Of a stretch of DNA of 64,000 nt, positions 6,993 through 34,999 are shown piece after piece. Position 1 is the stretch's first letter, and the number at the start of each line of letters is the position of its first letter. Both the position numbers and the translations under genes were made by a program. Below the pieces are notes generated by a model. The model had not been told where the DNA came from. It saw only the letters and a program-made list of their open reading frames with translations, and made no database searches. The DNA is taken from positions 248,001-312,000 of IMG/VR virus record IMGVR_UViG_3300032288_004964. One strand, written 5' to 3'.

Positions 6993-7078
6993 GCTACGGT
7001 ATGCAAACCGGAATAAGCGACCAGACTTTCAATCTGGACATCGAAAGATGTGTGCGGGTTCGAGCCCCGTCCGTAGTA
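6993..7078 (+). tRNA. tRNA with TTC (Glu) anticodon and long variable arm
   Basis: ccaga-CTTTCAA-tctgg; acatc-gaaa-gatgt V-arm; A73. Confidence 0.8.
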
Positions 7079-7081
7079 CAA

Positions 7082-9146: not shown

Positions 9147-9222
9147 GGGGTTACATGTACCAAGGCTTAGGCGAGACTGCTTTGCAAGCAATCTGTGGTG
9201 GGTTCGATTCCCACTAGCTCCA
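9147..9222 (+). tRNA. tRNA-Ala(TGC)
   Basis: TTTGCAA loop; G3.U70 pair; atypical D arm. Confidence 0.75.
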
Positions 9223-9234
9223 CAAAAAAAACAA

Positions 9235-9307
9235 GCGAAAGTAGCTCAGTTGGTAGAGCGTAACCTTGCCAAGGTTAAGGTCGCGGGTTCGAGACCCGTC
9301 TTTCTCT
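9235..9307 (+). tRNA. tRNA-Gly(GCC)
   Basis: taacc-TTGCCAA-ggtta. Confidence 0.85.
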
Positions 9308-9308
9308 C

Positions 9309-9452
9309 AAGATAGTAGCAATGTAAGAGTGTTACTTCGTATTTCAAACGACTAGTTCAGGTTCGAATCCTGGGTTCCGCTCAAAATAATATAAGCGGAA
9401 TTAGTGTAACGGCAGCACAGTAAAAACACACTCAGCAAATTTTCTCTATCTT
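9309..9452 (+). ncRNA. YrlA/Y-RNA-like permuted tRNA mimic
   Basis: Long closing stem (agatag/ctatct, gagtgt/acactc, ttact/agtaa) enclosing T-arm, loop-closed acceptor stem, then D-arm. Confidence 0.6.
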
Positions 9453-11729: not shown

Positions 11730-12317
11730 ATGATTAAAATTTTAGGTAAAATCCCAAAAGGTGAGTTTGGTTTAGCATGTTCCGGTGGAGTTGATTCTAT
11801 GGCTATTCTTGATTTCCTTATTACCGGGAATCATATTCCACATATTTTATACTTTAATCACAATACAAAACATGGTGATGATGCTGAAAAGTTTATTACT
11901 GATTATTGTAAAGAAAAAAATCTTAAATTAACAATCGGTAGAACATATCTTAAACCAACTTCAAATAAGGAAAAGATTTGGAGTAATGCTCGTTATGAAT
12001 TCTTTTCAAAATTTGATTTTCCTATCATGACTTGTCACCACTTAGATGATTGTGTAGAAACATATATCTTCTCTTGTCTGAGAGGATTTCAATCTGTTAT
12101 CCCATACTCTAAAGGTAATGTGATTAGACCGTTCTTATTGAATGAAAAATCGGTATTTACTAAATGGTGCATTGATAAGGAAGTTCCATTTATTCAAGAT
12201 GATTCAAATGATTGCTTAGACTATTCAAGAAATAGAATTAGACATCAAATTGTACCTGAGTCTTTATTAGTGAACCCAGGATTGAAAACAGTTGTTAAGA
12301 AAATGGTATCAAAATAA
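11730..12317 (+). CDS. tilS: tRNA(Ile)-lysidine synthetase (short form)
   Basis: PP-loop SGGVDS, HHLDD, IRPFL, DDSN...SRNRIRH motifs. Confidence 0.85.
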   Translation: MIKILGKIPKGEFGLACSGGVDSMAILDFLITGNHIPHILYFNHNTKHGDDAEKFITDYCKEKNLKLTIGRTYLKPTSNKEKIWSNARYEFFSKFDFPIMTCHHLDDCVETYIFSCLRGFQSVIPYSKGNVIRPFLLNEKSVFTKWCIDKEVPFIQDDSNDCLDYSRNRIRHQIVPESLLVNPGLKTVVKKMVSK

Positions 12318-14249: not shown

Positions 14250-14322
14250 GGTTCCTTCGTTCAACTGGACAGGACATCGGTCTTCTAAACCGAGGATATG
14301 GGTTCGAATCCCGTAGGGACTA
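14250..14322 (+). tRNA. tRNA-Arg(TCT)
   Basis: tcggt-CTTCTAA-accga. Confidence 0.9.
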
Positions 14323-14500: not shown

Positions 14501-14586
14501 TACTGTGTTGCCGTAGTGGCCGAACGGTCCAGACTGTTAATCTGGTGACGAATAGTCCAACGTAGGTTCGAATCCTACCACAGTAG
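14501..14586 (+). tRNA. tRNA-Asn(GTT) with long variable arm
   Basis: ccaga-CTGTTAA-tctgg; G73. Confidence 0.8.
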
Positions 14587-14591
14587 CAAAA

Positions 14592-15075: not shown

Positions 15076-15147
15076 TGTTCTGTAGCTCAATGGGAGAGCA
15101 CTTCCTTGACATGGAAGAGGTAGTCGGATCGTTACCGACCAGAACAA
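15076..15147 (+). tRNA. tRNA-Val(GAC)
   Basis: cttcc-TTGACAT-ggaag; T-loop ATCGTTA. Confidence 0.85.
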
Positions 15148-15148
15148 C

Positions 15149-15267
15149 TTAATGGATGGTGATTGAAAGAGTTACTTCGTTTAATGGAAAAACAATTGAC
15201 TTCTAATCAGTGCACGGTGGTTCGATTCCACCAGTATAAAACCTCTTTCTACCTTTTCCTCCATTAA
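15149..15267 (+). ncRNA. Y-RNA-like element carrying D, anticodon (TCT, Arg) and T arms on a long closing stem
   Basis: ttaatgga/tccattaa and gaaagag/ctctttc stems; shares GTTACTTCG...AGTA(T)AAAAC with the 9309 element. Confidence 0.55.
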
Positions 15268-15269
15268 AT

Positions 15270-15349
15270 GCTGATGTGGCACAGTGGCGACTGCACCAAC
15301 CTTGTAAGTTGGAACACAAACATCGGGGGTTCGAGTCCCTCCATCAGCT
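15270..15349 (+). tRNA. tRNA-Thr(TGT) with extended variable region
   Basis: ccaac-CTTGTAA-gttgg. Confidence 0.8.
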
Positions 15350-15356
15350 CAAAAAT

Positions 15357-15449: not shown

Positions 15450-15521
15450 TGCGATATAGCTTAATGGAAGAGCGGCTCCAGACATAGGGAGTTAGTCTTG
15501 GTTCGATTCCAGGTATCGCGA
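15450..15521 (+). tRNA. tRNA-Met-like with 8-nt anticodon loop (AGA-CAT-AG)
   Basis: gctcc-AGACATAG-ggagt; normal D and T arms. Confidence 0.6.
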
Positions 15522-15526
15522 CAAAT

Positions 15527-16464: not shown

Positions 16465-17922
16465 ATGAAAAATATTGTAACAAGAATTGCTCCTTCTCCA
16501 ACTGGTAAGTTTGTCCATTTAGGAAACTTAAGAACTTTACTTTATAATTACTTCCTTGCTAAAAGACACGGTGGTAAATTCCTTGTGCGTTTAGAAGATA
16601 CTGACCGTGACCGTTATACTCCAGAATTTCTACAATATTTTAAAGATACTTGTGATTGGTTAGGAATTGTACCTGATAATTCTTTTTGGAATCCAGATCC
16701 ATCAATTGGTTCATTTATTCAATCAGAAAGAGATTATTCTGACAAAGTTAAATTTCTATTAGATAATGGATTGGCTTATTATGCTTTTGATACAAAAGAT
16801 GATTTAGATATTTTAAAGTCTAAAGGTCTTAAATATGATGCAACCACTCGTATGTCTATGAATAACTCATTGACAAGACCTGATACTGATATTAATTCTG
16901 TTCCTTATGTTATTCGTTTTGCTGTTACACCAGATGTAGATATTACTTTTACAGATGCAATCTTAGGTGATATTACTATTAACACAAATACTTTAGATGA
17001 TAAGGTTTTAATTAAATCCAATGGTATTGGTTCTTATCATCTTTGTAATGTTTGTGATGATCATGATATGAAAGTTACTCATGTTCTTCGTGGACAAGAA
17101 TGGGTAAATTCTACTCCTTTTCATATTCTTATGTATAAAGCATTTGGTTGGGATATTCCTACTTTTGCTCACTTACCTCTAATTATGAATCCTGATGGTA
17201 AAGGTAAACTAGCAAAAAGAACGGCTGCTAAATATGGTATTCCTATTGCGCCACTTGGTTATACTGATGATAATGGAGTCTATATCCCAGGTTGGAAAGA
17301 TTTAGGTTATGATCCTAAGGCATTTATCAATTCACTTGCTTTAATTGGTTGGAATCCTGGTAATGATGTTGAAGTTATGTCCTTAGATGATATGATTAAT
17401 TCATTTTCATTAGACAGAGTTCATAAATCAGGTGCTCGTTTTGATATTGATAAAGCAAAATGGATTAACTCACACTATTTAAAGGCTACTGATAATAAAG
17501 ATTTAATTCCTTTTGTTAATATTGTGGATAATAGATATTCTAATGATAAATTAGATAAGATTATTACTTTAGCAAAAGATAGAGCTACTTTTAAGACAGA
17601 CTTAAATAATATTGTTGATTTGTTTTTTGATACACCTGTTATTACAGACTATTCAAAAATTGATGATAACTATATAAAAGTAATGTCTAGTTTTGTTGAT
17701 AATATTGACTCTGTTGATTTCAATGATACTGATAGTATTAAATTAACAATTTCTTCTATCTGTGATGGGTTTGGAATTAAGATTGGTAAAGTAATGCCTG
17801 GTTTGAGAATTGCTTTAGTTGGTGGAATAAGTGGACCAGATTTAATGACCACGATGTCAATTCTTGGTAAAGACCAAGTAAAATTGAGAATTCTTAACTC
17901 TACAAAAACAGTTACTGTATAA
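16465..17922 (+). CDS. gltX: Glutamyl-tRNA synthetase
   Basis: RIAPSPTG, HLGN (HIGH), RLEDTD, DDHDM-VTHVLRG, KLAKR. Confidence 0.92.
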   Translation: MKNIVTRIAPSPTGKFVHLGNLRTLLYNYFLAKRHGGKFLVRLEDTDRDRYTPEFLQYFKDTCDWLGIVPDNSFWNPDPSIGSFIQSERDYSDKVKFLLDNGLAYYAFDTKDDLDILKSKGLKYDATTRMSMNNSLTRPDTDINSVPYVIRFAVTPDVDITFTDAILGDITINTNTLDDKVLIKSNGIGSYHLCNVCDDHDMKVTHVLRGQEWVNSTPFHILMYKAFGWDIPTFAHLPLIMNPDGKGKLAKRTAAKYGIPIAPLGYTDDNGVYIPGWKDLGYDPKAFINSLALIGWNPGNDVEVMSLDDMINSFSLDRVHKSGARFDIDKAKWINSHYLKATDNKDLIPFVNIVDNRYSNDKLDKIITLAKDRATFKTDLNNIVDLFFDTPVITDYSKIDDNYIKVMSSFVDNIDSVDFNDTDSIKLTISSICDGFGIKIGKVMPGLRIALVGGISGPDLMTTMSILGKDQVKLRILNSTKTVTV

Positions 17923-23876: not shown

Positions 23877-25511
23877 ATGAATTTCATAGAAGAAAAAATA
23901 TTAGAAAAAGGAAATCTCGATAAGTTAAAACTTCGTTTTCCACCAGAACCAAATGGGGCTATACTAAACGATGGTAGAGTTGTCGGTGGTCTTCACTTAG
24001 GACATGCTAAATCCATTATACTAAATTTTGGATTAGCAGAAAAGTATAATGCTACATGTGTGTTAAGGTTTGATGATACAAATCCAACTACTGAAAGAAA
24101 AGAGTTTGTAGATTCAATGATTGAGGATATCAAATGGCTTGGTTATACTCCAAGTGAAATCAGATACACATCTGATTATTTTGATTTTCTTTATGAATGT
24201 GCTGTTACTTTAATTAAGAAAGGATTAGCTTATGTTGATGATTCAACATCTGAAGAAATTGCTAACTTAAAAGGAACTCCAACTTCAGTTGGTAAAGACT
24301 CACCTTATAAATCTAGAAGTATAGAAGAAAACTTAGACTTATTTAATAGAATGAGATTAGGTGAATTCTATGAAGGTTCTAAAATCTTGAGAGCCAATAT
24401 TGATATGACTTCTCCTAATATGATTTTAAGAGATCCGGTTCTTTACAGAATAATATCTAAGTCACATCACAGAACTGGTGATACTTGGAAGATTTATCCA
24501 ATGTATGACTTTGCTCATCCACTTTCAGATTATAAAGAAGGTATCACTGATTCCCTTTGTACTTTAGAATTTGAAGTTCATAGACCTTTATATATGTGGG
24601 TCTTAGAAAATTGTGATTTAGAAAATTCTTTACCAGAAGAAACTGAGTTTGCTCGTTTGAACATTGACTATACGGTTATGTCAAAGAGAAAACTAAAAAG
24701 ATTAGTTGAAGAAGGATTTGTTGATGGGTGGAATGATCCAAGAATGCCAACTATTTCTGGTTTAAGAAGAAGAGGTTTTACTCCAAACGCTATTAAAGAT
24801 TTCTGCGATAGAATTTCTGTTACCAGAAAAGAATCAGTTGTTTCTTATTTGCTTTTAGAAGAATGTTTAAGAACTGATTTGAATATAGTTACCAATAGAT
24901 TAATGGGTGTTATGGATCCAGTTAAGTTAGTTATTACTAATTGGGATAGCGGAACTGAAATGGTTGAAGTTGAAAATAATCCTGGCGATGAAAGTGCTGG
25001 AGTGAGAATGATTCCTTTTAGTGGTGAATTATTTATTGAAAGAGAAGATTTCAGAGAAGAAGCCAATAAAAAATTTCATAGATTGAAATTAGGTGGAGAA
25101 GTAAGACTAAAAGGAGCTTATGTTATTATGGCTAACGAAGTTATCAAAGATGAATTTGGGGAAATCACTGAGATCAGATGTACTTATGATCCTTTAACAA
25201 GATCGGGTATGACTTTTGAAAGAAAGATTAAAGGAACTATTCACTGGGTATCTGCTGAACACGGAGTTAGAATGGATGTAAATGAATATGATAGATTGTT
25301 CAATGATGAATCACCAGATAAAAATGAAGATGATTTTATCAATTATATCAACCCAGATTCACTTATAATTAATGATAAGGCAATCTTTGAACCTCACGTT
25401 TTAAACGTCAAGGCACCAGTTCAAATGATGAGAAAGGGGTATTATATTTTAGATACTGACGGTAAAAGTTTCAATAAAACGGTAAGTTTGAAAGAAGGTT
25501 GGGTAGGTTAA
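23877..25511 (+). CDS. glnS: Glutaminyl-tRNA synthetase
   Basis: RFPPEPNG, HLGH, RFDDTNP, YPMYDFAH, MSKRK, GWNDPRMPT. Confidence 0.95.
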   Translation: MNFIEEKILEKGNLDKLKLRFPPEPNGAILNDGRVVGGLHLGHAKSIILNFGLAEKYNATCVLRFDDTNPTTERKEFVDSMIEDIKWLGYTPSEIRYTSDYFDFLYECAVTLIKKGLAYVDDSTSEEIANLKGTPTSVGKDSPYKSRSIEENLDLFNRMRLGEFYEGSKILRANIDMTSPNMILRDPVLYRIISKSHHRTGDTWKIYPMYDFAHPLSDYKEGITDSLCTLEFEVHRPLYMWVLENCDLENSLPEETEFARLNIDYTVMSKRKLKRLVEEGFVDGWNDPRMPTISGLRRRGFTPNAIKDFCDRISVTRKESVVSYLLLEECLRTDLNIVTNRLMGVMDPVKLVITNWDSGTEMVEVENNPGDESAGVRMIPFSGELFIEREDFREEANKKFHRLKLGGEVRLKGAYVIMANEVIKDEFGEITEIRCTYDPLTRSGMTFERKIKGTIHWVSAEHGVRMDVNEYDRLFNDESPDKNEDDFINYINPDSLIINDKAIFEPHVLNVKAPVQMMRKGYYILDTDGKSFNKTVSLKEGWVG

Positions 25512-33610: not shown

Positions 33611-33695
33611 GAGGAAGTTCCAGAGTGGTCAAATGGGGCTGTGTAGTAACACGGCTGACTTTTAGTCTTCAGAGGTTCAAATCCTTTCTTTCTCA
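33611..33695 (+). tRNA. tRNA-Tyr-like with 8-nt anticodon loop
   Basis: gctgt-GTAGTAAC-acggc; long V-arm; A73. Confidence 0.6.
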
Positions 33696-33785
33696 CAAAA
33701 AATATTTTGAAAAACATTTGGTAGAATAAAAAAAAGTTTCTATCTTTGTAAAACAAAATTAAAAGGTATTATATAAAAAACATAT

Positions 33786-33979: not shown

Positions 33980-34840
33980 TTACAGAAATAATGACTTCGG
34001 TCATTAAAGTAAGTAGGGCGGCTTATAGTCCATAAATAATCTCTGAAAGGAGGATAAAGTGATCACAAATGCTAAATGTGATTGCGGCTTGACCGAAAGG
34101 TTGAGCTCGGGTAAGCGAGTGGAATACCATTATTCCTGAGTAGCCGAGGGTAACACTGTAGGCGAAATGGTTTAGTGATTAGGCGATGTAGATCGTCTGA
34201 TTGACTTCGGAAGAAGAATAGGAATAATCCATAGGAATCTTTGCAAGAAGTGGTGACCCACCAGTTATCATCATTGCGAATTCCAACTTGAGAGGTATCT
34301 CAAAGTCGAAAGACAATTTAGTGTACAGGTGGTGCTGTTACTAAACACTAAACTGACTACCAAGTCGGTGACCTTGCTAAGGTGAGGTCTGGTGAAGATA
34401 TCTTAAAGAGTTGTGATGGAGGCATCACACGGAGTAGTCTAGTATTCTTGAGGCCAAAAGCTTTGGGAACTAAGAGATAACCACTACTTCGACAAAATCT
34501 ACAGCACTAAAATTTACTTTTTGACGTAAAAATTAAAACTTAAATCGAAAGTGTTATCTAGTTACTGATAGAAAGGTACCTACTTAGTTATGGGTTGTCC
34601 ATAGCCACATAAGTCCGAAAGACTGGTGTGATTTTACCGAAAAGCTTATAGGGGGTCGAATCCCGAACTAGCCTGCGAGGGTTGGATAAGTAGAGTAAGT
34701 AGAGAGTATTCAGTGACTCAAGGGGTGGTTAGTCTAACTAACCGGTACTGACAAGATACCATTCAAAAGATGGTGGATAGATTTGGGAATACATAATCCA
34801 AACAAAGACTTGTCATATTAAGATGTAATCTCAGTCTTTT
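33980..34840 (+). ncRNA. Large structured ncRNA, GOLLD-like
   Basis: ~850 nt with no ORF in the track, higher GC than flanks, many GNRA/UUCG-capped hairpins, flanked by tRNAs; family name is from size and context only. Confidence 0.6.
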
Positions 34841-34844
34841 ATTT

Positions 34845-34920
34845 GGTCAGTTCGTCTAGCGGCATTCAGGACGGATATCTATTCAGATATCAAACATTGG
34901 TTCGAATCCAATACTGACTA
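34845..34920 (+). tRNA. tRNA-Glu-like with 8-nt anticodon loop
   Basis: gatat-CTATTCAG-atatc; normal D and T arms. Confidence 0.6.
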
Positions 34921-34999
34921 CTAAGTTTTCGTAGTGGTTAACTTACTCCGAAAGGGGGGTCTGTCAATGACAGTGTGACTACCTCAAAGTCACACATAT

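Follow-up and report, generated by a model that had tools for sequence, protein, structure and literature searches.

Our analysis indicates that a 119-base element inside a phage tRNA cluster, at positions 15149-15267 (+) of the window, is probably a Y RNA (a Yrl-type noncoding RNA) and the putative RNA partner of the phage's own Ro60/Rsr protein. By the window we mean the whole stretch of 64,000 nt that was analyzed (G000:C1:248001-312000 of the source record). The Y RNA reading follows from the co-occurrence of the element's family with TROVE genes, the adjacency of related RNAs to rsr, a covarying fold, a YrlA-type sibling, and the precedents of Yrn1 and phage phiLo. The structure is conserved, the family tracks TROVE genes, and the stem module recurs next to rsr; expression, binding to Rsr, and the identity of the effector are inferred. 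Counted against the reading are the distance of ~150 kb from rsr, the absence of the strict Rsr motif, and the lack of a match to the Rfam model of YrlA. The joining of a YrlA-type stem and UA kink to an unpermuted, nearly complete tRNA body appears to be new; no description of this layout was found in Rfam 15 or in the literature searched.

The source record is an IMG/VR virus of 385,333 bp with an estimated completeness of 95%; among public sequences, two uncultured phages of 634-642 kb, LR745206 and LR756502, are closest to it. DNA of the locus was also seen in metagenomes of freshwater, groundwater, and plankton (11 studies), and a run search returned 0 RNA runs containing it. The window is a translation island of a very large phage. 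It holds ~30 tRNA genes and one GOLLD RNA (ARAGORN; Rfam), and a search of the window with Rfam at gathering thresholds gave nothing beyond the tRNAs and the GOLLD RNA. Genes for tRNA-related proteins are found in the window and elsewhere in the record:

Window 11730-12317: TilS-like PP-loop protein
Window 16465-17922: GluRS
Window 23877-25511: GlnRS
G000:C1:330848-331450: T4 Rnl1-type ligase
G000:C1:154209-154673: Rnl2-type RNA ligase
G000:C1:383124-383492: CCA-adding-type nucleotidyltransferase

The two ligases and the CCA-adding-type enzyme fit a genome invested in tRNA maintenance. Some genes of the tRNA cluster are unusual. The GOLLD RNA (window 34430-34837, 270 bits, full length) is directly followed by a tRNA-like gene at 34845-34921 for which ARAGORN reads a 4-base anticodon (attc), and 8-nt anticodon loops (ARAGORN "acat" and "agta") were seen in the tRNA genes at 15450-15522 and 33611-33696. 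Long tRNAs of 81-87 nt, e.g., Glu, Asn, and Thr at 6993-7079, 14501-14587, and 15270-15350, may contain insertions.

Anatomy and conservation of the element

The element's paired ends lie within 1-2 nt of tRNA-Val(GAC), whose last base is 15148, and of tRNA-Thr(UGU), whose first base is 15270. Between these two genes, the following parts can be distinguished (window coordinates, with the evidence in parentheses):

15149-15156, +: distal terminal stem, 5' strand UUAAUGGA, beginning at 15149, one base after the end of tRNA-Val(GAC) (sequence and fold; compensatory changes in 10 orthologs)
15157-15164, +: internal loop, 5' side, with a GGUGAU block at 15158-15163 (positional profile common to both classes)
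15165-15171, +: proximal stem, 5' strand GAAAGAG (fold; covariation in orthologs)
15171-15179, +: junction motif GUUACUUCG (Rfam alignment; motif scan)
15179-15193, +: D arm, GUUU/AAUGGAA/AAAC (Rfam alignment; D-stem pairs 2 and 3 covary)
15195-15211, +: anticodon arm, AUUGA/CUUCUAA/UCAGU, with the triplet UCU at 15202-15204 (Rfam alignment)
15216-15232, +: T arm, GGUGG/UUCGAUU/CCACC (Rfam alignment; family parse)
15233-15242, +: AGUA, which pairs with UACU, followed by the 3' bulge UAAAAC (subfamily feature, 16 of 32 members)
15243-15259, +: proximal stem, 3' strand CUCUUUC, and then the internal loop's 3' side, rich in pyrimidines, UACCUUUUCC (fold and orthologs)
15260-15267, +: distal terminal stem, 3' strand UCCAUUAA, ending two bases before tRNA-Thr(UGU)

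The initial annotation had described a tRNA mimic mounted on a stem, with D, Arg(UCU) anticodon, and T arms in normal order, and both coordinates and anatomy were confirmed. The Rfam tRNA model (RF00005) aligned to 15173-15236 with 45.1 bits (E = 2.2e-6 in a search of the whole window), covering model positions 4-67 only, and ARAGORN called no tRNA at the element. The element folds with a minimum free energy of −26.5 kcal/mol (z = −2.27), and the internal loop between the proximal and distal helices is asymmetric. Within the junction motif, UACU provides the four leftover acceptor-like pairs, and the U, C, and G that follow correspond to tRNA positions 8, 9, and 10. The acceptor remnant is UACU/AGUA only (15173-15176/15233-15236), i.e., pairs 4-7/66-69, and positions 1-3/70-72 are occupied by U·U, G·A, and A·A. 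Since these positions are unpairable, the element has nothing to aminoacylate, and the claim that the acceptor is replaced by the stem and that the molecule is not chargeable held up: there are only 4 acceptor pairs and no free 3' end. At the border of stem and module, a YUAY sequence (UA kink) is present as UUAC (15172-15175). The GGUGAU block in the internal loop, which resembles a relaxed version of the motif GNCGAA known from bacterial Y RNAs, is a candidate contact site of Rsr.

The window has exactly two copies of the 9-mer GTTACTTCG (9331 and 15171), both located at a stem/cargo junction, in agreement with the earlier proposal that the element shares a scaffold with the RNA at 9309. Two copies are not significant by themselves; the significance comes from the family. 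Thirty-two distinct sequences with the layout of the element were collected from phage contigs by pattern scans of IMG/VR and BLAST against GenBank phages, and their stems were parsed with a structure-aware script; the motif is present at other loci, and in the genome itself four stem-junction sites were found. The search patterns fix the junction motif and the T loop, and therefore, the conservation of these two is partly circular and the number of members is a lower bound. A first scan with GTTACTTCG...AGTAWAAAAC had returned mostly chance matches in coding DNA, and only L007 and L008 were real.

The three arms are held by covariation. Across the 32 members, 3-5 pair types occur at each position of the D, anticodon, and T stems, and two-sided changes are numerous. 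G10-C25 of the D stem is invariant and the next two positions have 4-5 pair types each; the anticodon stem has 5 bp, every one with 3-5 pair types and 7-16 two-sided changes; and the inner pairs of the T stem covary as well. The outer stem behaves likewise. Cognate 5' and 3' flanks pair with a mean of −19.6 kcal/mol versus −11.4 kcal/mol (standard deviation, 3.5) for noncognate flanks, and RNAalifold recovered both outer helices from 10 close orthologs, with a two-sided change in 13 pairs. The proximal stem, for instance, is GAAAGAG/CUCUUUC in the element and AAAAGUG/CACUUUU in L036.

The anticodon loop of 7 nt keeps a pyrimidine at position 32 (29/32), U33 (28/32), a purine at position 37 (31/32), and A38 (25/32), and the triplet itself is unconserved. 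The assertion that the anticodon matches the surrounding cluster was not borne out, as 21 different triplets occur among the 32 members and close orthologs have UAA, CAA, or UAU where the element has UCU.

With regard to the junction, the initial annotation was right in part. The 5' half, GUUACUUCG, stood as a family feature, and the 3' half (AGUA and the A-rich bulge) is confined to a subfamily, the four UACU/AGUA pairs being kept in 16 of the 32 members. In LR745206 and LR756502, the closest GenBank relatives, ACU/ACA is found at this place instead, and the 5' GUUACUUCG is intact; hence, the motif is not kept merely for that pairing. All members of the collected family have UUAC, in part because of the search patterns; L086, which came from the tRNA model and not from a pattern, has it too. 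The least biased views of the motif are only this sequence and a AUACUUCG variant in LR745206. Further conserved features are a R-U-G-G-Y-G-A block at −16 to −10 from the junction, common to the unpermuted and the YrlA-like class, and a UUUUCY-like block seen repeatedly in 3' strands across the family. None of the 32 members has the strict Rsr motif GNCGAAN0-1G; the relaxed GGYGAW block is present at a fixed distance instead.

Link to Rsr and other cargoes on the same stem

The phage encodes an Rsr of its own: an ORF of 483 aa at G000:C1:112966-114417 has a TROVE domain (62.4 bits) and a vWA domain, and its closest relative, with 81% identity, is from the 634-kb phage LR745206. The element is on the rsr strand but ~150 kb away. 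Bacterial YrlA RNAs typically lie less than 4 kb from rsr, and the element is outside such a neighborhood. The family as a whole, however distant this one member, tracks TROVE genes. A TROVE ORF on the same strand was present in five of the first seven contigs found with the layout, the two without being fragments (9% and 25% complete), and a TROVE gene was present in 10 of 19 further layout contigs. These 10 comprise every contig with a completeness of 90% or more (five) as well as one with 84%; absence from fragmentary contigs is uninformative. None of 15 control contigs, which contained chance matches to the same search patterns, had a TROVE gene, and the base rate among phage records is ~0.2% (99 of 50,697; tblastn). 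For the YrlA-like sibling class, TROVE was found in 36 of 43 contigs and in 24 of the 26 near-complete ones. Furthermore, some family members are close to rsr:

L225: ~50 nt upstream of rsr, same strand
L242, L212, and L196: 0.7-1 kb from rsr, same strand
G003, G006, and G007: 5.6 kb from rsr, same strand

In bacterial genomes, TROVE was found within the 8-kb locus for 17 of 49 pattern matches, and isolates of Mucilaginibacter and Hymenobacter have a stem RNA with a GGUUACUUCG junction ~100 nt from rsr. Several Bacteroidota loci (L231, L248, L205, L221, and others) have an rsr-adjacent RNA with the same 5' strand, GAUGCCGUAGA...GGUUACUUCG, whose module consists of a D-loop-like segment, a long hairpin ending in a GNRA tetraloop, and a T arm; it adds one more unpermuted cargo, and cultured strains have it. 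Vibrio phage Va1 and crAss001 encode TROVE proteins and have no exact junction motif near rsr; the matches to the motif in these two phages lie in coding DNA and look like chance. RtcB and PNPase (RNase PH domain) were not found in the genome of the present phage, so that neither a repair-operon partner nor a RYPER partner of these types is encoded by it.

The stem module is not restricted to the element. The genome has 8 TTACTTCG sites, 4 of which are at the junction of the same stem type; besides the element, the junction 9-mer is found in siblings at window 9331, G000:C1:245683, and G000:C1:112550. The cargo differs from site to site:

G000:C1:~112530-112597: minimal, bare hairpin that has the GUUACUUCG junction and lies upstream of rsr at a distance of ~370 nt
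Window 9309-9452, +: YrlA layout (permuted tRNA), z = −3.32, with an ortholog in LR745206
Window 15149-15267, +: acceptor-less tRNA body (the element)
G000:C1:245608-245737: tRNA into which the stem is inserted, 2.3 kb upstream of where the window begins

The bare hairpin is kept in LR745206 with compensatory changes. The sibling at 9309 starts with the stem module, GUUAC, an anticodon-like hairpin (loop AUUUCAA), and a T arm, which are followed by a closed acceptor hairpin, a D arm, GUA, an AAAAC bulge, and the stem; its class comprises at least 119 viral contigs. The RNA at 245608-245737 has a full acceptor stem and D, anticodon, and T arms, with a closed hairpin of ~50 nt of the Y type between the D and anticodon arms, and ARAGORN made no call there. 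The same layout recurs in L114, L078, L043, L132, and L143, with CCA encoded in some copies. This layout is YrlA circularly permuted so that the acceptor ends are free, and the RNA might be processed, or even charged, like a tRNA. In one and the same genome, at least four RNAs thus carry differing cargoes on one stem module, which supports the modular scaffold that the initial annotation had suggested from the pair at 9309 and 15149.

A further stretch of ~285 nt upstream of rsr (G000:C1 ~112612-112895) has ends that pair (GCAAACA...UGUUUGC), a AUAGCGAUAG block, and a AUACUUCG junction, and may be a large Y RNA. Together with the hairpin at 112530-112597 it is 82-84% conserved in LR745206 (L003:936-1300), and an intrinsic terminator lies between it and rsr.

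Known Y RNAs and rival explanations

The element shares several traits with YrlA (Rfam RF02553; PMC4201824): the genome has an Rsr, the 5' and 3' ends form a terminal stem with a purine-rich 5' block, the YUAY kink is conserved (UUAC in the element), and the tRNA-like module has D and T arms able to form an elbow. In contrast, the order of YrlA is permuted (V arm, T arm, closed acceptor hairpin, and D arm) and its Rsr stem exits at the position of the anticodon stem, whereas in the element the order is D, anticodon, T, the Rsr-type stem takes the place of the acceptor, and a closed acceptor hairpin is absent. YrlA of Salmonella has no anticodon loop, and the 5' motif of bacterial Y RNAs is GNCGAAN0-1G (PMC4201824). 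The Rfam YrlA model did not match window positions 15100-15300 even at E ≤ 10, nor did it match the sibling at 9309, and its gathering score of 69 bits was reached by 0 of 20 related loci; a member of the sibling class, L059, is nevertheless aligned end to end with 35.4 bits versus the 69 bits for gathering. The best genome-wide match to YrlA (window 9171-9289, 33.7 bits) is an artifact spanning two adjacent tRNAs: it runs from the T arm of the first through the spacer into the D arm of the second. False positive though it is, the match shows how YrlA could have arisen from a tRNA dimer, as has been proposed.

The sibling class at 9309 is the phage YrlA already described by Chen et al. 2014 (PMC4201824). 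The sibling and the YrlA of Caulobacter phage CcrColossus have exactly the same UUACUUCG junction. In CcrColossus (JX100810.1, 109217-109284; L202:1631-1698), a stem strand, UUACUUCG, an anticodon-like hairpin, and a T arm lie upstream of the TROVE gene; this sequence is the 5' part of a YrlA-type RNA, and the "tRNA-Gln" entered there in GenBank is therefore an annotation error.

An unpermuted order is otherwise known only from Yrn1 of Deinococcus radiodurans, whose D-like, anticodon-like, and T arms follow each other in that order, and Yrn2 of the same organism is cotranscribed with a tRNA (PMC4201824). As in the element, the unpermuted arms of Yrn1 lie inside a terminal stem, and this stem binds Rsr; Yrn1 is a known tether of Rsr and PNPase (Chen et al. 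2013/2014). By description, which is the level at which the two were compared, Yrn1 has a partial D arm, an "anticodon loop" of 6 nt, and a metazoan-like Ro-binding helix, whereas the element has a full D arm, a 7-nt loop with U33 and purine-37, and a YrlA-type stem module. Yrn1 and YrlA were judged by the original authors to be of independent origin (PMC4201824); unlike these two, both layouts share one scaffold in one genome here. The second precedent is Thermus phage phiLo, whose Ro60 binds the phage RNAs Yrl1 and Yrl2 as well as host PNPase in a ternary complex (PMC12135203). Like phiLo, the present phage has a Ro60 and Y-like RNAs (here predicted) and no PNPase of its own. The Yrl RNAs of phiLo, however, are simple stem-bulge-stem structures beside the gene with a CGAA motif and with no tRNA-like module reported (PMC12135203), whereas the element has a tRNA body and lies 150 kb from rsr within a tRNA array. 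With canonical tRNAs, the element has in common its three arms (D, anticodon, T), U8 and G10, the D-loop GG, the T-loop UUCRA, and a variable loop that is 4-5 nt long; it differs in lacking both the 7-bp acceptor stem and a free 3' end, the stem continuing for ~25 nt per strand.

Vault RNA (RF00006) is bound by the TROVE protein TEP1. In alignments, its conserved GGUUACUUCGA block and its box B, which resembles a T arm, fall on the element's junction and T arm (15171-15229), and they align to the siblings as well. The Vault model gives 15.5 bits for the element, with a gathering score of 34, and similarly ~15 bits for L059:5693-5737, but on the whole genome the ordinary tRNA-Arg(UCU) scores higher (17.2 bits), and therefore, the likeness may reflect generic tRNA ancestry and is a lead only.

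The exposed anticodon arm invites a different reading, raised by the initial annotation, in which the RNA, either free or held by Rsr, is a bait or competitive inhibitor of anticodon nucleases that blocks a tRNA-cleaving defense of the host. The loop keeps the signature of a tRNA (U33 in 28/32, purine-37 in 31/32) while the triplet varies among close relatives, and the Rnl1-type and Rnl2-type ligases of the phage are the usual equipment for anticodon-loop repair. Furthermore, the authors of the work on the Salmonella rsr-yrlBA-rtcBA operon proposed that the domain of YrlA resembling a tRNA may act as a competitive inhibitor of an anticodon nuclease (PMC7790460). On the other hand, turnover of the triplet may be neutral drift in an unconstrained loop, neither a nuclease nor a correspondence between particular triplets and particular defenses points to a decoy, and the strongest statistical signal, TROVE, is not needed by a free decoy. 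We regard a bait as unlikely to be what the element is, and a decoy function, being compatible with a Y RNA, is rather a possible job of the Rsr ribonucleoprotein than the identity of the element.

Two further readings were weighed. As the element exactly fills the spacer between two tRNAs, and as many relatives are likewise inside tRNA arrays, it could be a processing or regulatory element of the tRNA operon, e.g., an RNase III site or a maturation spacer, with no life as a free RNA. We give this very little credence: a spacer needs neither covarying D, anticodon, and T arms nor conserved elbow nucleotides, it would not track TROVE genes, and some members adjoin rsr without any tRNA array (L225). 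A decaying tRNA gene, or a precursor that is matured in an unusual way to a working tRNA-Arg, would explain why the core scores well as a tRNA, and a CCA-adding-type enzyme is encoded by the phage. Yet positions 1-3/70-72 are unpaired, there is no discriminator or CCA context, and the outer stem is kept by compensatory change across many lineages, which is not expected from decay. In addition, a normal tRNA-Arg(UCU) is already present at 14250-14322, ~900 nt upstream of the element; the two are only ~60% alike, and a recent copy of this gene as the source of the element's body was ruled out. We give this last explanation next to no weight.

Proposed mechanism and implications

If the element is a Y RNA, it would be transcribed within the tRNA array and then released by RNase P and the 3'-end enzymes that trim the flanking tRNAs. 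As its ends abut tRNA-Val and tRNA-Thr, ordinary tRNA end processing would free a stem-closed RNA of ~119 nt. The terminal stem, the internal loop (5' GGUGAU and a 3' pyrimidine block), and the GUUAC kink would form the Rsr-binding module, and the cargo, a near-complete tRNA body with intact elbow and anticodon loop and without an acceptor end, would be the effector module. By analogy to other Ro60 ribonucleoproteins, the cargo may tether Rsr to a partner that recognizes tRNA. Candidates for this effector are host PNPase or another tRNA-binding or tRNA-cleaving enzyme; since the phage has no PNPase of its own, the effector is expected to be a host enzyme, or a protein yet to be recognized.

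These findings also bear on how Y RNAs are found. They can sit far from rsr in tRNA arrays, where searches of the rsr neighborhood miss them, and tRNA finders miss or misname them, as exemplified by the CcrColossus YrlA that is called a tRNA-Gln. What the tRNA-like module does is the central open question on bacterial Y RNAs, and four tRNA-derived modules on the same stem, sometimes in one genome, provide natural module swaps with which recruitment can be tested. Because the unpermuted version keeps a canonical anticodon loop, which YrlA of Salmonella lacks, the published idea of a nuclease inhibitor becomes directly testable. An experimental entry point is provided by cultured Bacteroidota, in which this junction lies next to rsr.

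A more far-reaching proposal, which we put forward as a speculation with the odds clearly against it, is that the GGYGAW stem and the GUUACUUCG kink form a plug-and-play scaffold for Rsr with swappable tRNA modules, the versions with an anticodon aiming the ribonucleoprotein at enzymes that read the anticodon loop. If true, the modules of this scaffold would include a bare hairpin, a permuted tRNA (YrlA), an acceptor-less tRNA with a live anticodon loop, and a whole tRNA with the stem as an insert. The scaffold would then be used by phage and bacterial Rsr alike, and the ribonucleoprotein would serve as bait, inhibitor, or repair platform in the conflict between phage and host over tRNA cleavage.
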